A stretch of DNA of 23,854 bases from Paragordius varius. Taxonomy: Eukaryota; Animalia; Nematomorpha. Shown here one piece after another: positions 1-23,300 of the stretch. Every line of letters starts with the position of its first letter. Within the stretch, counting starts at the first letter, position 1. Under the pieces are notes generated by a model. The model worked only from the letters and a program-made list of their open reading frames with translations, was not told the origin of the DNA and made no database searches. The translations under genes and the position numbers were made by a program. The stretch is taken from positions 1 to 23,854 of the forward strand of contig CAXTSY010000017.1 in NCBI GenBank assembly GCA_964247055.1, read 5' to 3'.

Positions 1-2901
1 ACCCTAACCGCCCCAACCCCCCCCCCTACCTATCCTACCTAACCCCTAACCCGAACCCTAACCCCTAACCCTAACCCTAACCCTAACCCTAACCCTAACC
101 CCTAACCCTAACCCTAACCCTAACCCTAACCCTAACCCTAACCCTAACCCTAACCCTAACCCTAACCCTAACCCTAACCCTAACCCTAACCCTAACCCTA
201 ACCCTAACCCTAACCCTAACCCTAACCCTAACCCTAACCCTAACCCTAACCCTAACCCTAACCCTAACCTAACCCTAACCCTAACCCTAACCCTAACCCT
301 AACCCTAACCCTAACCCTAACCCTAACCCTAACCCTAACCCTAACCCTAACCCTAACCCTAACCCTAACCCTAACCCTAACCCTAACCCTAACCCTAACC
401 CTAACCCTAACCCTAACCCTAACCCTAACCCCTAACCCTAACCCTAACCCTAACCCTAACCCTAACCCTAACCCTAACCCTAACCCTAACCCTAACCCTA
501 ACCCTAACCCTAACCCTAACCCTAACCCTAACCCTAACCCTAACCCTAACCCTAACCCTAACCCTAACCCTAACCCTAACCCTAACCCTAACCCTAACCC
601 TAACCCTAACCCTAACCCTAACCCTAACCCTAACCCTAACCCTAACCCTAACCCTAACCCTAACCCTAACCCTAACCCTAACCCTAACCCTAACCCTAAC
701 CCTAACCCTAACCCTAACCCTAACCCTAACCCTAACCCTAACCCTAACCCTAACCCTAACCCTAACCCTAACCCTAACCCTAACCCTAACCCTAACCCTA
801 ACCCTAACCCTAACCCTAACCCTAACCCTAACCCTAACCCTAACCCTAACCCTAACCCTAACCCTAACCCTAACCCTAACCCTAACCCTAACCCTAACCC
901 TAACCCTAACCCTAACCCTAACCCTAACCCTAACCCTAACCCTAACCCTAACCCTAACCCTAACCCTAACCCTAACCCTAACCCTAACCCTAACCCTAAC
1001 CCTAACCCTAACCCTAACCCTAACCCTAACCCTAACCCTAACCCTAACCCTAACCCTAACCCTAACCCTAACCCTAACCCTAACCCTAACCCTAACCCTA
1101 ACCCTAACCCTAACCCTAACCCTAACCCTAACCCTAACCCTAACCCTAACCCTAACCCTAACCCTAACCCTAACCCTAACCCTAACCCTAACCCTAACCC
1201 TAACCCTAACCCTAACCCTAACCCTAACCCTAACCCTAACCCTAACCCTAACCCTAACCCTAACCCTAACCCTAACCCTAACCCTAACCCTAACCCTAAC
1301 CCTAACCCTAACCCTAACCCTAACCCTAACCCTAACCCTAACCCTAACCCTAACCCTAACCCTAACCCTAACCCTAACCCTAACCCTAACCCTAACCCTA
1401 ACCCTAACCCTAACCCTAACCCTAACCCTAACCCTAACCCTAACCCTAACCCTAACCCTAACCCTAACCCTAACCCTAACCCTAACCCTAACCCTAACCC
1501 TAACCCTAACCCTAACCCTAACCCTAACCCTAACCCTAACCCTAACCCTAACCCTAACCCTAACCCTAACCCTAACCCTAACCCTAACCCTAACCCTAAC
1601 CCTAACCCTAACCCTAACCCTAACCCTAACCCTAACCCTAACCCTAACCCTAACCCTAACCCTAACCCTAACCCTAACCCTAACCCTAACCCTAACCCTA
1701 ACCCTAACCCTAACCCTAACCCTAACCCTAACCCTAACCCTAACCCTAACCCTAACCCTAACCCTAACCCTAACCCTAACCCTAACCCTAACCCTAACCC
1801 TAACCCTAACCCTAACCCTAACCCTAACCCTAACCCTAACCCTAACCCTAACCCTAACCCTAACCCTAACCCTAACCCTAACCCTAACCCTAACCCTAAC
1901 CCTAACCCTAACCCTAACCCTAACCCTAACCCTAACCCTAACCCTAACCCTAACCCTAACCCTAACCCTAACCCTAACCCTAACCCTAACCCTAACCCTA
2001 ACCCTAACCCTAACCCTAACCCTAACCCTAACCCTAACCCTAACCCTAACCCTAACCCTAACCCTAACCCTAACCCTAACCCTAACCCTAACCCTAACCC
2101 TAACCCTAACCCTAACCCTAACCCTAACCCTAACCCTAACCCTAACCCTAACCCTAACCCTAACCCTAACCCTAACCCTAACCCTAACCCTAACCCTAAC
2201 CCTAACCCTAACCCTAACCCTAACCCTAACCCTAACCCTAACCCTAACCCTAACCCTAACCCTAACCCTAACCCTAACCCTAACCCTAACCCTAACCCTA
2301 ACCCTAACCCTAACCCTAACCCTAACCCTAACCCTAACCCTAACCCTAACCCTAACCCTAACCCTAACCCTAACCCTAACCCTAACCCTAACCCTAACCC
2401 TAACCCTAACCCTAACCCTAACCCTAACCCTAACCCTAACCCTAACCCTAACCCTAACCCTAACCCTAACCCTAACCCTAACCCTAACCCTAACCCTAAC
2501 CCTAACCCTAACCCTAACCCTAACCCTAACCCTAACCCTAACCCTAACCCTAACCCTAACCCTAACCCTAACCCTAACCCTAACCCTAACCCTAACCCTA
2601 ACCCTAACCCTAACCCTAACCCTAACCCTAACCCTAACCCTAACCCTAACCCTAACCCTAACCCTAACCCTAACCCTAACCCTAACCCTAACCCTAACCC
2701 TAACCCTAACCCTAACCCTAACCCTAACCCTAACCCTAACCCTAACCCTAACCCTAACCCTAACCCTAACCCTAACCCTAACCCTAACCCTAACCCTAAC
2801 CCTAACCCTAACCCTAACCCTAACCCTAACCCTAACCCTAACCCTAACCCTAACCCTAACCCTAACCCTAACCCTAACCCTAACCCTAACCCTAACCCTA
2901 A
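1..2901 (-). repeat. Telomeric repeat array (TTAGGG)n, seen as (CCCTAA)n; left end of a chromosome, about 480 units
   Basis: CCCTAA tandem from the window start to ...CCCTAA at 2901. C-rich strand 5' at the sequence start is the orientation expected for a true left chromosome end. Bases 1-60 are degenerate. Variant units are CCCCTAA at 62, 99 and 429 and CCTAA at 268; no variants seen from 436 to 2901. Confidence 0.98.
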
Positions 2902-2902
2902 C

Positions 2903-3492
2903 GGCGTCGTCAGTTCGTTTTCAGCATATTTTTTCAGCAATCATTCTATCCGTTGTCCGTCACTTTCTAGCCGTCGTCAGTTGGTTTGCATTCCCCCTAT
3001 CCGTCGTCAGTCATTTTTCGGCATTCCTCCTATCCTACGTCAGTCATTTTTTAGCAATCATTCTATCCGTCGTCAGTCTGTTTTTGTCCGTCACTTTCTA
3101 GCCGTCGTCAGTTAGTTTTTTGCATTCCCCCTATCCGTCGTCAGTCATTTTCCAACAATCATCCTATCCGTCGTCAGTCATTTTTCGGCATTCCTCCTAT
3201 CCGTCGTCAGTCTGTATTTGTCCGTCCTTTTCTATCCGTCGTCAGTTGGTTTTCCTGCATTCTCCCAATCCGTCGTCAGTCATTTTTCAACAATCATCCT
3301 ATCTGTCGTCAGTCTGTTCTTATCCGTCGTCAGTTTGTTTTAAGCATTCCTCTTATCCGTCGTCAGTCATTTTTCAGCGATCATCCTATCCGTCGTCAGT
3401 GATTTTTCGGCATTCCCCTATCCGTCGTCAGTCATTTTGAATTCTATGTGTCGTCAGTCTCTTCCTAGCAGTCGCCAGTTCGTTTGCATTCC
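2903..3492 (-). repeat. Subtelomeric array of about 18 diverged 33-bp-type units (core CTATCCGTCGTCAGT on +); outer domain of the left inverted arm
   Basis: Recurrent (C)TATCCGTCGTCAGT / TAGCCGTCGTCAGT about every 33 bp. It is the reverse complement of the array at 9490-11359 but more heterogeneous, with several deleted or eroded units. Confidence 0.93.
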
Positions 3493-4064
3493 TGAGGAAG
3501 TATTTTAAAAAATCGTTAGAAGATATTAAAAAACATATTTAAACATTTCCACCGGAATTCACTTTTAATCACACCATTATGTAGGGCATTAATTTTTTCC
3601 AGACAAATCACAAAATTAACAATTACACACCCAAATTAATATAAACACAAATTTCCAACTATACATTTGTTTAAGCTTTTTTATAAATGTTTTTAATACG
3701 AGTTTTCAATTATTATTTAATGGTATCTAAAAACTGAAAATATGCTTTTTTATGTGTTTTATTGTAATAATTAATATGATAACCTAGTATAAATCTTAGC
3801 ACTCCTTAATAATTATGATTTTTACAAATATCAATATAATGTTTGTTTAGTTATTTTAACTTACGCTTTATTTGTGTGTTTTAATTGTTAGCAATATTGA
3901 TATTTTTTATTAGGGTTATCAATGTTTTACTATGTTTTTTAGTACAAAAACTAATCATACTTTTCTCGTTATCGTTTAAAACGGTACTTTTGCAGCCGAT
4001 AACATGTTAGAGATAAAAACTATTATAATTTTTTTATAATCATGTTTTCATAGTTTGGTATTTT
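3493..4064. repeat. Inner AT-rich domain of the left inverted arm
   Basis: 3493-3830 is the reverse complement of about 9128-9471 (roughly 12-13 mismatches in the first 180 bp by eye). 3835-4064 is the reverse complement of 8031-8263. Homology stops at TAGTTTGGTATTTT (4064) / AAAATACCAAACTA (8031). Confidence 0.92.
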
Positions 4065-5170
4065 GATCCAATATGTACGCTATAGATGTGAGTATGATTA
4101 ATTTTTTTAATAGTATCAAAATTATAAAAATATATTTTTTTTTCTGTGTTTTATTATACAGGCTATTTATTAATAATTATAATAATCTAGTATGAATCTT
4201 GCCGCATATAAATAATATTTTGATATATCAGTACATTCATGTTTACTTGTTTTACCTTTTGGGTTATAAGTTTGGCAGCTGGCATCATAAATACGAAAGA
4301 TAATTATTCTATTTTTGTTGACAATTATGTGATTGGGGTATTAAGCTAGTATGAATCTTGCCGCCCCTAATTTCGATATATCAGTCTTCTGCGTTATTTG
4401 CGTGTTGATTTTTTTTGCAACATCGATATTTAATTTGGATTATTAATGTTTTTTTACATTTAAGCAATTTTTATTTTCTGATCATAGTTTTAATTGGAAC
4501 TTTCGCAGCTGGATAACATGTTAAATACAAAAGATAATTCTATTTTTGTTGACAATTATGTGATTTTTTTAGTTTAACTGTTTGGGGTATTATGCATTAC
4601 ACTATATATGTGTTTTTATATTTTCCGCTTAATTGATGCATGACTAATCTGTTTCTATCAAAAAAAAATATATATTTTTCTGTGTTTAATGGTACAGGCT
4701 TTTTAAATAATTAATATAATATTCTAGTAAGAATCTTAGCTCATTTAAATAATTATGATATTTTAAAATAGTATCCTGATGCTTACGTTATATTTCTAAT
4801 GCGTTTTTTGTCTGTTGACTTTGTTTGCACAATCGATATTTTGCATTAGAAACATGAATGTTTTACCAGGTTTTTTACAACATTTTAAAACGTTTATTTC
4901 TCGTCATTGTTTTAAACGGTACGTACGCAGCTTTATAACATGTTAAAGATAAAGGAATGTGATTTTCATAGTTTATTATACGTGGTCATTATGCATTAGG
5001 CTATATATGTGTTTATATATTTGTCTCTACCGATGTTTACTTATTTTGTCTTATGCGTTTTTTATGTTATAATTTTGTTATTTATATTTTTTATAACATC
5101 ATAGTTTGTTATTGTATTAAGCTATAGATTGTTTAATTGCCGCTAAAATTTGATGCGTGATTAATCTTTA
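3745..5170 (+). repeat. Old, degenerate direct repeats of a roughly 400-540 bp AT-rich module (3-4 copies, one partial)
   Basis: Shared anchors: CTAGTA(T/A)(G/A)AATCTT at 3784, 4187, 4346, 4724; GCAGC..ATAACATGTTA at 3992, 4505, 4927 (partial at 4275); TTTTTCTGTGTTT near 4139 and 4676; TTATGCATTA..CTATATATGTGTTT near 4590 and 4990. Boundaries are approximate. Confidence 0.75.
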
Positions 5171-5369
5171 TCAGTAACGTACAAATATGTAATTTGAACA
5201 AAATGTTTTTTAACAAAATTTATTAATAAATAAACAGAAAAGAATAATAAAAAAGTTTGATTTTATAGAAATATGTTTGAAATTTAATATTTGTTGAATT
5301 GCATAAATAATAATAATTTCAAGCCATTAAAGTCAGTTTTTTTAAATATCATTTAATAAACTTTCTTAA

Positions 5370-5900
5370 TTAATATTTTGCATTCAACTACAGCATGTAA
5401 TTTAAATATATTAAATTTAAATTTTACATTTTATAATATGTTTTTAATAAAAGACTATGTTATATAAAATTATTTATTTATATTGGAGTAAAATTACGTG
5501 TTACAATAAAAGTATTAAACTAAATTTTGCAGATTACTTTAATTATTATAATAAATAAATATGGTAGTGATTATTTTTTTTAATATTCAAAAAAATAAAT
5601 ATTTTCAATTATATTAATAAGTTGTTACATAAAACCGATTAATATTTCGCATTCAACTACAGCGTGAATTATATATAATCAAATTATTGAGAATTTGGAA
5701 TTTATTATTATGTTTTTAATGTAAGTCTTTTATATCCTATTATATATTTGAATTAGAACACAGTAATTACGTGTTACAATTAAAGTATTATAAAAAATTT
5801 TGTATATTGTTTATTATAATGAATAAATCTGGTATTAATCATTTTTTCTAATTAAATAAATAAAAATAATAATAATTTATGTGCAAGATGTTGTTAATAA
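5370..5900 (+). repeat. Diverged tandem duplication of about 270 bp
   Basis: CATTCAACTACAGC at 5381 and 5650; AATTACGTGTTACAAT at 5492 and 5765 (offsets 269 and 273). Confidence 0.75.
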
Positions 5901-6130
5901 ATATTATATCAATTATATTGATTATAAATTGTGATAAAATAATATCTAATCGACCTAAAACAAGACTAAGCGTTAACATAAAACTATTCTTTTATCTAGG
6001 TTTAACGAATACAAAAATTAATTATTATTAAAATAATTCTTTTAGTAAGTTTATTATTTTAAATTATAATCGCATCTAAAACTAAATTAGAATTTGTATT
6101 AAACTGTAGTTTAATGATAAAAAATTATTT

Positions 6131-6221
6131 TGTTTCATAATACTTTTATGGTAAAACATCTTTGATAGTGCCATTGTTTCATAATACTTTCTTTATGGTA
6201 AAACATTTATGATAGTGCCAT
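6131..6221 (+). repeat. Two-copy tandem duplication of 44-47 bp
   Basis: TGTTTCATAATACTTT(CTT)TATGGTAAAACAT..TGATAGTGCCAT at 6131-6174 and 6175-6221. Confidence 0.85.
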
Positions 6222-8030
6222 TTATAAGATATGTTTTGATATTTTAATTGCTAAAAATTTAACCTAAATAAAACAACATTTTTTTGTATAGCATAAAACA
6301 TTTTTGGTTTATAAAGATCAGAAACATGTTTTTTTAAAAAAATAATATTCATTTCTTATTTTAAAAAAGATATTTTTTTATTTTTTATGGACTAACATAT
6401 GCTATTGTAATATGTTGTCACTTTATAAATAATGTACATGAATTTAACTTTATTAAAACATAGTTCACTAGAATTTTTTATATAAATCAGTTCTTAGCGA
6501 ACGCACCATGTGTTTGCGGTTAATATATTTTTATTATAGCTGGTATGGAGTACAAACCATATTTATTTATTTCTATAATAATTCTATTTAGTTGTAAAGT
6601 GTGACCTAAAATTAATAAATGAATTATGTCTATTAATTAAACAGCATTTTCTATTATGTTTACTGAAATAATTAAATTATATTATTAGTTACGTTAATTT
6701 AATGATTTTGATAACTCACAAACTGGAAAAAATAAGTAGGATAAAACGTATAAAGCCTGTTAAATAAATCTAAATATTTAGATCATGAATTGAAATACAT
6801 TTTCAAAATTTTTTATAAGCTCTTCTATTGCTATAAATATTTTATCAGATAATTATATACATCAATATAATTATTTTGATATTTAATTACTTTTTGAAAG
6901 TAATTATAGTATTTTTTTCTAACAAACATTTTTTATTTAAAAATAATAAATGATTATTTATTTTTTTTAATGAAATATCTAGATAAAACAGGCAAAACGC
7001 AAAACAAATAATTATTAACAGTTTAAATTAACAAAAACGAGAACTATATTGTTAAAAACAATGTTTAATAAAAAAAATTTGCCGTATATATATTTTTACA
7101 GATTGTGCTCAAAATAAATAATATATTATTAAAAAATATTGTTAACAATAATATTATATATTTCAATTTACAAATAAATAAATTATGATATTTTTTTAAT
7201 TTAAATGTTAACTTAAGCGTGTAATTATTTCTATGCATTAATTAATTGACATTTATATTAAAAAATATAAAATATAAAAATTATTTTTTTGTAAAAATAG
7301 AAAATTAAGGTTATAGAAATTTTAACCATGTTTGGAATTTTTTTTATTTTAAAAACTATAAAAGTTATGTTATTAATACGAATTTATAAATGATTAAACA
7401 TATCATTTTATGCTTTTTATAAATAATAATATTTTTTGCAAATTTTTTTGAAGTTAACAACTTAAGTTAAAAAAGTAGCTTAAAAAACAATATTAGAATA
7501 TGTTTATAGCATAAATTTAATAAATGTTAGAATTTTGAAAAATATCTTTTTACGCTAATTTAAATTTAAAAATTATTGACACTCTTTGCATTTATTTTAA
7601 TTAATGAATATTTGTTGTTTAGATTTTTACTTTACTAAACTCGTTAATCCACTGACATTTTTTTGATTTTAAATAGATCTCTCAATATCACTTTGTTTTT
7701 TATAATCCTTTTGATTGATCTTTATTTTGTAAAAAATGATAACTCAGCTTTAAAATTAATAATTTTAACATATATTTACAATCTTAATTGGCCTATAATT
7801 TAGTTTCTATTTGCCTTGATTGGTTTAAATAAGCCTAAAAAACCCTATCTAAACAACTTAAAATTAACATCAAACAATTTTTAATATTTGAGGCAAAACT
7901 TCATTCAAAGTTTCTGACATATCACCATCATATAAGAGTTTTTTAAGGAAGAAAAGGTGGGTAGAATATAACACCAAAAAGGTAATAAAAAATTGGGATG
8001 CTATCATATATTTTTTTTTTGATATGTTTT

Positions 8031-8263
8031 AAAATACCAAACTATGAAAACATGATTATAAAAAAAATATAATTGTTTTTATTTTAACATGTTATCGGCT
8101 GCAAAAGTACCGTTTTAAACGATAACAAAAAAAAGGATGATTAGTTTGAAATGTACTAAAAAACATAGTAAAACATTGATGGCCCAAATAAAAAATATCA
8201 ATATTGCAAACAATGAAAACACACAAATAAAGCGTAAGTTAAAATAACTAAACAAACATTATT
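8031..8263. repeat. Inner domain of the right inverted arm, proximal piece
   Basis: Reverse complement of about 3835-4064, e.g. AAAGCGTAAGTTAAAATAACTAAACAAACATTAT and GTTATCGGCTGCAAAAGTACCGTTTTAAACGATAAC. Confidence 0.9.
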
Positions 8264-8265
8264 AA

Positions 8266-8817
8266 ATGCAGATATACCAAACAAATGAAATTGTACAGTA
8301 TTTAGCAACAAGGCTATCAAAAAGAATGGATTACAACAGCAGTAAACAAAATTTTAAAAAGAAATCTATCTCTTATTTCGGCAAATCCAGATGGTTGTGT
8401 AACATAAAAGTAGTTTATAAACCAACATCAAACGTTTTAAAAATGTTAAAGTCTAAGGAAGTGGAAATGGAAAACACGATATACAAGTTGAGATGCAAGA
8501 ATTGCCCGGCAATTTACATAGGCCAGTCAAAGCCAAACTTAAAGGTAAGATATAAGGAACATTAAAAAAGCAAAAGTTCGGCCATGTTTCTGCATTGCGT
8601 GGATAACAACCATGAATGCTCAAACAGAATTGACGTTTTCGTTGAAAGAAAACACAGCGCAAGTAACACAAAAAAAGCCCTCTTTATACAGAGCGCAGAA
8701 GATGGTTTGCTTAATCGCCGTAAAAAGAGGAAAGCTATAAATTCTGAAACTAAATCATTTATAAAAAATTATCGAATTTTTAATGACAAACCATTTTATA
8801 GTGTTGATATTACTTAA
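8266..8817 (+). pseudogene. GIY-YIG endonuclease domain with CCHH zinc-finger motif (Penelope-type), interrupted by an in-frame TAA at 8563-8565
   Basis: ORFs 8266-8565 and 8584-8817 are in the same frame (offset 318 nt). Joined translation: ...SYFGKSRWLCNIKVVYKPTSNVLKMLKSKE..TIYKLRCKNCPAIYIGQSKPNLKVRYKEH*KSKSSAMFLHCVDNNH...ALFIQSAEDGLLNR. This matches the PLE pattern VYxIxCxxCxxxYIGxT...RxxEH...SAxxxHxxxxxH...LNR, recognised by motif only, without a database search. Confidence 0.88.
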
Positions 8818-9033
8818 ATTTTAATAATTTTACGCTTATACATTTATTTACAATTAATTTTTGTGAAAAAAAATACACATTTGATTTTTTACATCACAAC
8901 GGTTTTCTAAGTGATCTTTCTTTCTTTTGTTCACTAACGGTTTGTGATTTTTTTCCTATATAAGTAATATCAACCATGATTTTGTTCATTTTTTTAATTA
9001 TTATTTTCTTATATTATATATATTTTTCTTAAC

Positions 9034-9072
9034 TAATCTCCTGATGATGCTATGGCAAAAATTTGAGAATTA
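9034..9072 (+). ncRNA. Probable degenerate minimal (type I) hammerhead ribozyme in the PLE 3' UTR
   Basis: Stem I TAATCTC (9034-9040) / GAGA(A)TTA (9065-9072); core CTGATGA (9041-9047); T plus a 2-bp stem II GC-TATG-GC; then AAAA where GAAA is required (G12 appears mutated to A); short palindromic AATT as stem III. It lies about 220 nt downstream of the endonuclease frame on the same strand. Confidence 0.55.
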
Positions 9073-9120
9073 AAAAATTATATTTTTATTATTTGCGTTA
9101 TTTTACGACGATTCCTACAT

Positions 9121-9471
9121 CATTATTTTATAGATATTTTAAAAAATCATAATTATTAAGGAGTGCTAAGATTCATACTAGGTTATCATATTAATTATTA
9201 CAATAAAACACAGAAAAAAACATATTTTCAGTTTTTAGATACCATTAAATAATAATTGAAAACTTGTATTAAAAACATTTATAAAAAAGCTTAAACATTT
9301 GTATATTTGGAAATTAGTGTTTATATTGATTTGGGTGTGTAATTGTTAATTTTGTGATTTGTCTGGAAAATATTAATGCCCTACAAGATAGTGTGATTAA
9401 AAGTGAATTCCCGTGGAAATGTTTAAATATGCTTTTTAATATCTTCTAACAATTTTTTAAAATACTTCCTC
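9121..9471. repeat. Inner domain of the right inverted arm, distal piece
   Basis: Reverse complement of about 3493-3840, e.g. GGAGTGCTAAGATTCATACTAGGTTATCATATTAATTATTACAATAAAACAC and GTGTGATTAAAAGTGAATTCC. Confidence 0.92.
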
Positions 9472-9489
9472 ATATCTCTCGAGAGGAGT

Positions 9490-11359
9490 AATGCAAACGA
9501 ATTGGCGACTAGGAAGAGACTGACGACACATAGGATGATTCAAAAATGACTGACGACGGATAGGGAAATACCGAAAAATCACTGACGACGGATAGAATGA
9601 TTGTTGAAAAATGACTGACGACGGATAGGGGGAATGCAAAAAACCAACTGACGACGGCTAGAAAGTGACGGACAAAAACAGTCTGACGACGGATAGAATG
9701 ATTGCTAAAAAATGACTGACGACGGATAGGAGGAATGCCGAAAAATGACTGACGACGGATAGGGGAAATGCAGAAAACCAACTGACGACGGCTAGAAAGT
9801 GAGGGGCAGAAACAGACTGACGACGGATAGGATGATTGCTAAAAAATGACTGACGACGGATAGGATGATTGTTGAAAAATGACTGACGACGGATAGGGGA
9901 AATGCAGAAAACCAACTGACGACGGCTAGAAAGTGAGGGGCAGAAACAGACTGACGACGGATAGGATGATTGCTAAAAAATGACTGACGACGGATAGGAG
10001 GAATTCCGAAAAATGACTGACGACGGATAGGATGATTGTTGAAAAATGACTGACGACGGATAGGGGAAATGCAGAAAACCAACTGACGACGGATAGGGGA
10101 AATGCAGAAAACCAACTGACGACGGCTAGAAAGTGAAGGACAGAAACAGACTGACGACGGATAGGATGATTGCTTAAAAATGACTGACGACGGATAGGAG
10201 GAATGCCGAAAAATGACTGACGACGGATAGGGTAATTGTTGGAAAATGACTGACGACGGATAGGGGAAATGCAGAAAACCAACTGACGACGGCTAGAAAG
10301 TGGGGGACAGAAACAGACTGACGACGGATAGGATGATTGCTTAAAAATGACTGACGACGGATAGGAGGAATGCCGAAAAATGACTGACGACGGATAGGAT
10401 AATTGTTGGAAAATGACTGACGACGGATAGGGGAAATGCAGAAAACCAACTGACGACGGCTAGAAAGTGAGGGGCAGAAACAGACTGACGACGGATAGGA
10501 TGATTGCTAAAAAATGACTGACGACGGATAGGAGGAATGCCGAAAAATGACTGACGACGGATAGGGGAAATGCAGAAAACCAACTGACGACGGCTAGAAA
10601 GTGAGGGGCAGAAACAGACTGACGACGGATAGGATGATTGCTAAAAAATGACTGACGACGGATAGGATGATTGTTGAAAAATGACTGACGACGGATAGGG
10701 GAAATGCAGAAAACCAACTGACGACGGCTAGAAAGTGAGGGGCAGAAACAGACTGACGACGGATAGGATGATTGCTAAAAAATAACTGACGACGGATAGG
10801 AGGAATTCCGAAAAATGACTGACGACGGATAGGATGATTGTTGAAAAATGACTGACGACGGATAGGGGAAATGCAGAAAACCAACTGACGACGGATAGGG
10901 GAAATGCAGAAAACCAACTGACGACGGCTAGAAAGTGAAGGACAGAAACAGACTGACGACGGATAGGATGATTGCTTAAAAATGACTGACGACGGATAGG
11001 AGGAATGCCGAAAAATGACTGACGACGGATAGGGTAATTGTTGGAAAATGACTGACGACGGATAGGGGAAATGCAGAAAACCAACTGACGACGGCTAGAA
11101 AGTGGGGGACAGAAACAGACTGACGACGGATAGGATGATTGCTTAAAAATGACTGACGACGGATAGGAGGAATGCCGAAAAATGACTGACGACGGATAGG
11201 ATAATTGTTGGAAAATGACTGACGACGGATAGGGGAAATGCAGAAAACCAACTGACGACGGCTAGAAAGTGAGGGGCAGAAACAGACTGACGACGGATAG
11301 GATGATTGCTAAAAAATGACTGACGACGGATAGGAGGAATGCCGAAAAATGACTGACGA
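9490..11359 (+). repeat. Array of about 57 units of 33-35 bp (core ACTGACGACGG(A/C)TAG plus one of five tails); outer domain of the right inverted arm, with an 802-bp higher-order repeat
   Basis: Tails: A GATGATTGCTAAAAAATG, B GAGGAATGCCGAAAAATG, C GATGATTGTTGAAAAATG, D GGGAAATGCAGAAAACCA, E AAAGTGAGGGGCAGAAACAG. HOR starts at 9682, 10484 and 11286 (truncated). The ORF track repeats at the same 802 offset. Confidence 0.96.
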
Positions 11360-20300: not shown

Positions 20301-23300
20301 AAATATTTTGGGGATCGGACTCTAAATGTAATTTTTATGAATTTTTTAAATATTTAAAAAATTTATTTTATACGATTTTAAAAATAAAAATGGCTACCTA
20401 AAATCCAAATTTGATCAGGTGATGTCACCATAATTTTTTTTGGGTAGCCCTATGGTAGTTCCATCATCACCCCAAATATTTTCGAGATCGGAGTATAAAT
20501 GTAATTTTTATGAATTTTTTAAATATTTAAAAAATTTATTTTATACGATTTTAAAAATAAAAATGGCTACCTAAAATCCAAATTTGATCAGGTGATGTCA
20601 CCATAATTTTTTTTGGGTAGCCCTATGGTAGTTCCATCATAACCCCAAATATTTTTGAGATCGGACTTTAAATGTAATTTTTATGAATTTTTTAGATATT
20701 TAAAAAATTTATTTTATACGATTTTAAAAATAAAAATGGCTACCTAAAGTCCAAATTTGATCAGGTGATGTCACCATAATTTTTTTTGGGTAGCCCTATG
20801 GTAGTTCCATCATCACCCCAAATATTTTGGGGATCGGACTATAAATGTAATTTTTATGAATTTTTTAAATATTTAAAAAATTTATTTTATACGATTTTAA
20901 AAATAAAAATGGCTACCTAAAATCCAAATTTGATCAGGTGATGTCACCATAATTTTTTTTGGGTAGCCCTATGGTAGTTCCATCATCACCCCAAATATTT
21001 TCGAGATCGGAGTATAAATGTAATTTTTATGAATTTTTTAAATATTTAAAAAATTTATTTTATACGATTTTAAAAATAAAAATGGCTACCTAAAATCCAA
21101 ATTTGATCAGGTGATGTCACCATAATTTTTTTTGGGTAGCCCTATGGTAGTTCCATCATCACCCCAAATATTTTCAAGATCGGAGTATAAATGTAATTTT
21201 TATGAATTTTTTAAATATTTAAAAAATTTATTTTATACGATTTTAAAAATAAAAATGGCTACCTAAAATCCAAATTTGATCAGGTGATGTCACTATAATT
21301 TTTTTGGGTAGCCCTATGGTAGTTCCATCATCACCCCAAATTTTTTGGGGATCGGACTATAAATGTAATTTTTATGAATTTTTTAAATATTTAAAAAATT
21401 TATTTTATACGATTTTTAAAATATAAATGGCTACCTAAAATCCAAATTTGATCAGGTGATGTCGCCATAATTTTTTTTGGGTAGCCCTATGGTAGTTCCA
21501 TCATCACCCCAAATATTTTGGGGATCGGACTATAAATGTAATTTTTATGAATTTTTTAAATATTTAAAAAATTTATTTTATACGATTTTAAAAATAAAAA
21601 TGGCTACCTAAAATCCAAATTTGATCAGGTGATGTCACCATAATTTTTTTTGGGTAGCCCTATGGTAGTTCCATCATCACCCCAAATATTTTCGAGATCG
21701 GAGTATAAATGTAATTTTTATAAATTTTTTAAATATTTAAAAAATTTATTTTATACGATTTTAAAAATAAAAATGGCTACCTAAAATCCAAATTTGATCA
21801 GGTGATGTCACCATAATTTTTTTTGGGTAGCCCTATGGTAGTTCCATCATCACCCCAAATATTTTCGAGATCGGAGTATAAATGTAATTTTTATGAATTT
21901 TTTAAATATTTAAAAAATTTATTTTATACGATTTTAAAAATAAAAATGGCTACCTAAAATCCAAATTTGATCAGGTGATGTCACCATAATTTTTTTGGGT
22001 AGCCCTATGGTAGTTCCATCATAACCCCAAATATTTTTGAGATCGGACTTTAAATGTAATTTTTATGAATTTTTTAGATATTTAAAAAATTTATTTTATA
22101 CGATTTTAAAAATAAAAATGGCTACCTAAAATCCAAATTTGATCAGGTGATGTCACCATAATGTTTTTTGGGTAGCCCTATGGTAGTTCCATCATCACCC
22201 CAAATATTTTGGGGATCGGAGTATAGCCCTATGGTAGTTCCATCATCACCCCAAATTTTTTGGGGATCGGACTATAAATGTAATTTTTATGAATTTTTTA
22301 AATATTTAAAAAATTTATTTTATACGATTTTTAAAATATAAATGGCTACCTAAAATCCAAATTTGATCAGGTGATGTCGCCATAATTTTTTTTGGGTAGC
22401 CCTATGGTAGTTCCATCATCACCCCAAATATTTTCGAGATCGGAGTATAAATGTAATTTTTATGAATTTTTTAAATATTTAAAAAATTTATTTTATACGA
22501 TTTTAAAAATAAAAATGGCTACCTAAAATCCAAATTTGATCAGGTGATGTCACCATAATTTTTTTTGGGTAGCCCTATGGTAGTTCCATCATAACCCCAA
22601 ATATTTTTGAGATCGGACTTTAAATGTAATTTTTATGAATTTTTTAAATATTTAAAAAATTTATTTTATACGATTTTAAAAATAAAAATGGCTACCTAAA
22701 ATCCAAATTTGATCAGGTGATGTCACCATAATTTTTTTTGGGTTCCATCATAACCCCAAATATTTTTGAGATCGGACTTTAAATGTAATTTTTATGAATT
22801 TTTTAGATATTTAAAAAATTTATTTTATACGATTTTAAAAATAAAAATGGCTACCTAAAAACCAAATTTGATCAGGTGATGTCGCCATAATTTTTTTTGG
22901 GTAGCCCTATGGTAGTTCCATCATCACCCCAAATATTTTCGAGATCGGAGTATAAATGTAATTTTTATAAATTTTTTAAATATTTAAAAAATTTATTTTA
23001 TACGATTTTAAAAATAAAAATGGCTACCTAAAATCCAAATTTGATCAGGTGATGTCACCATAATTTTTTTTGGGTAGCCCTATGGTAGTTCCATCATCAC
23101 CCCAAATATTTTCGAGATCGGAGTATAAATGTAATTTTTATGAATTTTTTAAATATTTAAAAAATTTATTTTATACGATTTTAAAAATAAAAATGGCTAC
23201 CTAAAATCCAAATTTGATCAGGTGATGTCACCATAATTTTTTTTGGGTAGCCCTATGGTAGTTCCATCATAACCCCAAATATTTTTGAGATCGGACTTTA

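Follow-up and report, generated by a model that had tools for sequence, protein, structure and literature searches.

How does a chromosome end come to carry, between its telomere and a large satellite, several kilobases of DNA laid out as a mirror image, and is such a block a mobile element or the outcome of end repair? The question is raised by a subtelomere of the nematomorph Paragordius varius, contained in a stretch of 23,854 bp (the window) that makes up all of contig C28 (CAXTSY010000017.1) of an assembly of 110.6 Mb in 44 contigs (GCA_964247055.1), which was searched as a whole. The contig reads, in order, telomere, outer array of 33-bp repeats, 572-bp outer arm, 3,966-bp spacer, inverted inner arm, inverted inner array and 173-bp satellite, and the DNA between telomere and satellite is referred to below as the block. 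With a probability of roughly 0.78, the block is a chromosome-end duplicon that arose as a terminal inverted duplication of the fold-back type, was healed by a telomere and spread by recombination between ends sharing the satellite.

A preliminary description of the contig had proposed a mirror-image layout between telomere and satellite, and self-comparison confirmed this layout and resolved its coordinates (Table 1). Positions 3493-3840 of the outer arm match 9472-9125 at 94.3% identity over 348 nt (E value 1e-153), and positions 3836-4064 match 8262-8031 at 92.7% identity (E value 5e-93). Both identities are far beyond chance and fall within the 90-95% estimated by eye in that description, which did not mention that the inner arm of C28 is split by an 862-bp insert at 8263-9124. 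The homology of the arms continues into the arrays, interrupted by an indel of ~15 bp at 9473-9517, and the arrays are themselves inverted copies of one family of 33/35-bp units with up to 96% identity over 200-270 nt. They form two islands of 45% GC (2903-3492 and 9518-11359) with opposite GC skew in a strongly AT-rich genome, the DNA that they flank having 14-29% GC, and the G-rich strand of the outer array runs on into the telomeric G strand. The two halves of the inverted repeat are strongly unequal (outer 1.16 kb, inner 3.33 kb). The outer array, at 590 bp, is also shorter and more decayed than the inner arrays, which range from 660 to 1,840 bp across the ends described below. The boundary between spacer and arm is sharp at both 4064 and 8031, with 8030/8031 situated within a TTTT/AAAA run.

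The block is not unique to this contig. Arm, spacer and array each match seven contig ends, namely the left ends of C1, C2, C5, C7 and C28 and the right ends of C3 and C4, as the preliminary description had anticipated in predicting one module at many chromosome ends. Every first-look candidate from the genome search was scored (24/24 for the arm, 14/14 for the array), and no internal or dispersed copy of arm, spacer or array was found in the assembly. The order of telomere, outer arm, spacer and inner arm is constant at all seven ends and the polarity is uniform; beyond the block, the other six ends likewise continue into the 173-bp satellite, with a constant polarity relative to the block at the ends examined. 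Other types of telomere junction, in which the telomere is followed by AT-rich DNA, occur at C1-right, C3-left, C4-left, C5-right, C8-right, C9-right, C10-left and C11-left. Since C1, C3, C4 and C5 carry such a different junction at their other end, these contigs run from telomere to telomere and bear the block at one end each. Block-free ends were characterised by junction words only. The presence of the same block, in the same polarity and next to the telomere, on several non-homologous chromosomes, together with its absence from internal sites, fits a subtelomeric duplicon homogenised by recombination.

The junctions of the block are shared along with its interior. The word that spans the junction of telomere and array occurs seven times in the assembly, once per end, and is identical among them except for one G/C position that tracks the subfamilies described below. 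The word spanning the junction of array and satellite occurs six times, at all ends but C28, whose own version occurs once. Homology between ends crosses both block boundaries into the common flanks. The array units contain a 15-nt core, and the preliminary description had both outer ends of the block cut inside it. For C28 this is correct, as both of the quoted end sequences are present: the telomere joins the array within the core at 2902/2903, the array ending in GG ahead of the first TTAGGG, and the satellite junction at 11359/11360 also lies inside the core. The inner cut is peculiar to C28, however, as the satellite junction at the other six ends lies in the variable part of the unit. 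The two termini thus stand in different registers of the repeat unit, the outer within the core and the ancestral inner in the variable part. The further suggestion that the core acts as a preferred point of breakage or joining was not borne out, since the telomere junction represents one inherited event at 7/7 ends and the ancestral satellite junction does not fall within the core. That each end broke independently at its core was rejected on the same two grounds, descent of the telomere junction and position of the ancestral inner junction.

These findings bear directly on the possibility that the block is a DNA transposon of the Foldback type (FB/TU-like), or a mobile unit of another sort, inserting at chromosome ends or building them, as the preliminary description had also proposed. 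In architecture the block resembles such an element, whose long inverted ends consist of tandem subrepeats and enclose an AT-rich domain and a non-coding middle, and it is present in several genomic copies. A transposon would nevertheless be expected elsewhere than at these ends, and no copy of arm, spacer or subrepeat lies at an internal or dispersed site. All ends share their flanks and homology runs into them, which leaves no insertion boundary. Target-site duplications, of 8-10 bp in Foldback elements, are lacking, the flanks being telomere on one side and satellite on the other with no direct repeat between them, and termini in different unit registers provide no common terminal sequence. 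The spacer offers no transposase, having no open reading frame (ORF) of more than 57 amino acids and no Pfam match among its eight ORFs, though non-autonomous Foldback elements also lack one. Nor is there an autonomous partner with matching ends, as the array occurs nowhere else in the assembly. The only coding trace in the block belongs to an unrelated retroelement fragment. Distribution, target-site duplication, termini, shared flanks and the phylogeny of the arms all fail to agree with a Foldback-like transposon, and this origin is very improbable.

The phylogeny just mentioned also provides the history of the copies. In maximum-likelihood trees of two arm segments from all seven ends, the outer arms form one clade and the inner arms the other (support 100/99 and 98/95); the arms therefore cluster by side and not by element, contrary to what is expected of a transposon. 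Within the tree of the first segment both clades split into the same subgroups, A (C28, C7, C3 and C4) and B (C1, C2 and C5). Over aligned columns, outer and inner arms are 93-95% identical to each other, A and B share 95-98% identity over the full block (a divergence of 2-5%), and ends of one subgroup reach 97-100%, with the comparison of A and B over 6100-8050 taken from BLAST segments in place of MAFFT, given an indel of ~960 bp in the spacer that separates the two subgroups. Two indels of 119-174 bp set C28 apart from C7, and C28 is structurally like C3 and C4, so it counts as an end in its own right and not as a second copy of C7. Gene conversion from arm to arm within an end was not seen in the arm trees, and the separation of the clades by side demonstrates that the inversion has a single origin. 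Because the two clades contain matching subgroups, the order of events can be given as inverted duplication, first retroelement insertion, split of A and B, and spread within the subgroups. The low divergence within subgroups (0-2%) is consistent with exchange between ends, though it is not proof of it.

The first retroelement insertion of this sequence is the 862-bp insert, which occupies the same place in 7/7 inner arms and in 0 outer arms. It consists of the GIY-YIG endonuclease end of an ORF followed by a 3' tail, with its 3' end toward the satellite. Frame 1 of 8263-8820 covers the GIY-YIG motif and is broken by one stop; the Pfam GIY-YIG match has an E value of 3e-4, just short of the cut-off, and the neighbours of the insert in a protein language model, which serve as a lead only, are animal proteins with GIY-YIG and HTH_animal domains. 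The insert matches more than 50 internal sites on C1-C11, where the 5' starts vary and most matches extend to the 3' end of the query, and related copies lie in ORFs of up to 788 amino acids, often as inverted pairs. A paralogous fragment in the C1 inner arm (L034:7372-8031) has 57% protein identity to the C28 insert, and its relatives are proteins of 675-866 amino acids with RVT_1 in mid-protein and, in most, a C-terminal GIY-YIG. The combination of RVT_1 with a C-terminal GIY-YIG is the defining architecture of Penelope-like elements with an endonuclease, for a long time known from animals alone (PMC8557442). Because the relatives of the paralogue show this architecture, the insert is classified, from its sequence, as a 5'-truncated Penelope-like element. 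Its boundaries are accurate to ~7 bp, and a possible but ambiguous target duplication of 5-6 bp surrounds it.

At the ends of subfamily B only, the inner arm contains this paralogue as a second, different 5'-truncated Penelope-like fragment in the same orientation (C1 L034:7370-8313, with equivalents in L032 from C5 and L033 from C2). This fragment has an open frame of 221 codons and is flanked by a TATAAT-like 6-bp repeat. Two independent Penelope-like insertions have thus occurred within a 230-bp target, both with the 3' end toward the satellite. Among the dispersed copies of the first element, those at C9:964685-965701, C2:7755300-7755999 and C4:9577137-9578103 contain ~143-155 extra bases at query position 138 that are missing from the subtelomeric copy. 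Retained introns are known for Penelope-like elements, and the extra stretch may be a retained intron or an indel. Penelope-like copies are often closely paired in inverted orientation, and some have ORFs of 700-790 amino acids (C5:6761465-6762962, C4:248571-249565, C7:2025043-2028411 and C6:306010-309055); these families may be recently active.

Divergence between the arms also addresses whether the palindrome is real. C28 is short, unplaced and ends in satellite, its satellite junction is unique, and its inner array contains an 802-bp duplication with 98-99.7% identity, all of which could point to fold-back chimeric long reads or a mis-join that created a false palindrome. Such an artefact would yield identical arms and no spacer, yet the arms have diverged by 6-7% and one of them has an 862-bp insertion, and six further ends, on megabase contigs, share the structure and agree in their phylogeny. 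An assembly error as the source of the block is scarcely credible, and could at most concern the C28-specific junction at 11359/11360. The duplication itself is a tandem one (9558-11359) that reaches this junction, and reflects either unequal exchange of recent date or an effect of the assembly. In C4 it is the outer arm (L004:1501-2381) that is partly tandem-duplicated, with arm positions 17-390 followed by 24-572.

The most likely route to the block begins with an ancestral end that had the order satellite, array, arm. A terminal break at such an end would have been repaired by an inverted duplication of the fold-back or sister-fusion type, with ~4 kb of single-copy DNA remaining as the loop of the fold-back. 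The resulting dicentric would then have broken inside one copy of the array, and telomerase would have healed that end, giving satellite, array, arm, spacer, inverted arm, truncated array and telomere. Next, in keeping with the order obtained from the trees, the Penelope-like retroelement entered the inner arm. Finally the whole end was copied to other ends with both junctions included, as the shared junction words indicate. Both junctions are intact and only satellite-bearing ends have the block, and for this reason the likely route of copying is recombination, break-induced replication or ectopic exchange initiated within the satellite that these ends have in common, which would have given rise to subfamilies A and B. 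The block today is probably a passenger that exchange keeps alike between ends. An old inverted duplication from end repair, the other origin considered in the preliminary description, fits the tests of spacer size, truncation of the distal copy, single origin and shared junctions.

Several points weigh against this history. For the fold-back step the only evidence is the layout, and the copying mechanism, whether break-induced replication or ectopic exchange, is an inference too. After a divergence of 5-7%, no clear microhomology can be read at the boundary of spacer and arm. The arm-like copies in the spacer are oriented as the outer arm, which would make the outer copy the original and require the dicentric to have broken on that side, a course that is allowed and presumed here. 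The evidence comes from one assembly. Lastly, the array core is nearly invariant even though the unit types have diverged, a hint of constraint that would not be expected of a pure passenger.

This last point, and the position of the block, are best considered together with the possibility that the block is a selected end module. The block and the satellite might mark the centromere-near end of a telocentric chromosome, or the CpG-rich arrays with their core might contain putative binding sites or a promoter of telomeric transcripts, in which case sharing between ends would reflect function plus exchange. Each contig that the junction search showed to run from telomere to telomere has exactly one block-bearing end, and the block always adjoins the 173-bp satellite, to which C3 and C4 have scattered matches through roughly their final 0.7-0.9 Mb. 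A 5'-truncated retroelement is fixed in the block, as at the telocentric ends of the mouse (PMC10880262). The observed/expected ratio of CpG is 1.4-1.5 in the arrays (1.5 in the outer array), which at 45% GC lie amid DNA of otherwise 17-29% GC. Among 169 units of 33 nt from all ends, positions 6-15 of the 15-nt core are near 1.6-2 bits and much of the remaining unit is variable; positions 1-5 were fixed by how the units were cut. On the other side, the satellite array of C1 is only ~18 kb, and concerted evolution alone suffices to keep the core alike. The conservation of the core may indicate a binding site or merely how the units arose, and a sequence-specific role of the core is possible. 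Taken as a whole, a selected end module is an unlikely explanation. Somewhat more doubtful is its fullest form, in which block and satellite would constitute a telocentric, centromere-near end on each chromosome, equivalent to a conserved miniature short arm, with arrays and core as putative binding sites or promoter for an end or centromere-boundary function, and with the mirror symmetry and the same-orientation Penelope-like insertions as part of end building.

The remaining features of the window can be described briefly. Coding or RNA genes in the spacer were ruled out by searches for ORFs, Pfam, Rfam and tRNA: the spacer has no Rfam match at E values up to 0.1, and hence no hammerhead ribozyme, and no tRNA. 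The block outside the retroelement as a whole contains nothing coding and no match to an RNA family. At its start (4100-5022) the spacer repeats the arm two or three times in direct orientation, in decayed form and at 73-82% identity. It is found at the seven block ends only, apart from a ~110-bp dispersed repeat at 6286-6398; this AT-rich repeat has many internal matches on both strands, often as close inverted pairs, and looks like a small dispersed repeat resembling a miniature inverted-repeat transposable element. The first ~60 nt of the telomere are degenerate, as is usual for a read end. A 21-mer of the satellite occurs 18,666 times in the assembly (11,099 forward and 7,567 reverse), for a total of ~3.2 Mb, and two satellite units at 22000-22449 are lengthened to 224 bp by an internal duplication of 51 bp. 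A search of the literature returned no subtelomeric satellite of 173 bp next to TTAGGG repeats. Two ends that have no block, C1-right (C1:15228239-15228294) and C4-left (C4:3138-3178), have an identical telomere junction word that differs from that of the block. A second family of shared subtelomeres thus seems to exist, in which case the sharing of subtelomeres would be general in this genome.

Table 1. Features of the 23,854-bp window, in order from the telomere
Feature	Position	Strand	Basis
Telomere, CCCTAA repeats, ~477 units	1-2902	+	sequence read
Outer array, 33/35-bp units, 16 decayed units, abuts telomere directly	2903-3492	-	repeat analysis
Outer AT-rich arm, 572 bp, first of ~3 degenerate direct copies reaching ~5022	3493-4064	+	self-comparison
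Spacer, single-copy, 3,966 bp, 17-25% GC	4065-8030		self-comparison and genome search
Inner arm, spacer-side piece, inverted copy of outer-arm positions 344-572, 92.7% identical	8031-8262	-	self-comparison
Penelope-like retroelement fragment, 5'-truncated, 862 bp	8263-9124	+	translation, Pfam, genome search
Inner arm, array-side piece, inverted copy of outer-arm positions 1-348, 94.3% identical	9125-9472	-	self-comparison
Arm-array transition, homologous to 3440-3492, with ~15-bp palindromic indel	9473-9517		direct reading
Inner array, 33/35-bp units, 55 units, higher-order periods 134/167/334 bp	9518-11359	+	repeat analysis
Satellite, 173-bp units, 72 in window, reaching contig end	11360-23854	+	repeat analysis

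The locus presents a clean and datable case of how a subtelomere is made, in which a repair scar became fixed, gained a retroelement and spread with its flanks to one end of several chromosomes. For annotation, the block is best treated as a subtelomeric duplicon, masked as such and kept out of the transposon library, and it can serve as a natural marker of chromosome polarity. Its occurrence at one end per chromosome beside a large satellite raises the testable question of where the centromere is positioned.

The Y' and X elements of yeast and the subtelomeric duplicons of humans resemble the block in being specific to chromosome ends, with a fixed polarity, spread and homogenised by recombination, and divided into subfamilies. 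Yeast Y' encodes a helicase-like ORF, whereas the block has mirror symmetry and is non-coding. As a subtelomeric duplicon it is species-specific but of a known kind, a case of ordinary subtelomere evolution that implies no new principle. With inverted ends of tandem subrepeats around an inner domain and a non-coding centre, the block has the layout described for Foldback elements such as Drosophila FB, Tetris and Galileo-like Foldbacks (PMC4079207). Unlike these, it has no target-site duplications, dispersed copies, common terminus or transposase partner, and its flanks reveal copying of whole ends. The telocentric ends of the mouse have the order telomere, 5'-truncated L1, TLC repeats and minor satellite (PMC10880262). 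In common with them, the P. varius ends have a fixed short block between telomere and large satellite that includes a 5'-truncated retroelement and is found at one end only of non-homologous chromosomes; they differ in that the block is an inverted repeat, the retroelement is Penelope-like and not L1, and the centromere identity of the satellite is only putative, with an array of ~18 kb on C1. The layout of the block matches the human inverted duplication-deletion (inv-dup-del) rearrangements and other products of breakage-fusion-bridge cycles. Where fold-back inverted duplications have been sequenced in humans, the size of the single-copy spacer ranges from 766 to 70,466 bp, with 3,428 bp as the median, and new TTAGGG repeats cap the distal copy, in half of the cases with microhomology of 1-4 bp (PMC3907307). 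The block likewise consists of inverted copies around a spacer of a few kilobases (3,966 bp here), and its distal copy is shortened and joined straight to TTAGGG repeats, with the outer array ending in GG. Unlike the human cases, the duplicated segment is only ~1-2 kb, and the event is an old one (5-7% arm divergence) that became fixed and was then copied to six further ends.

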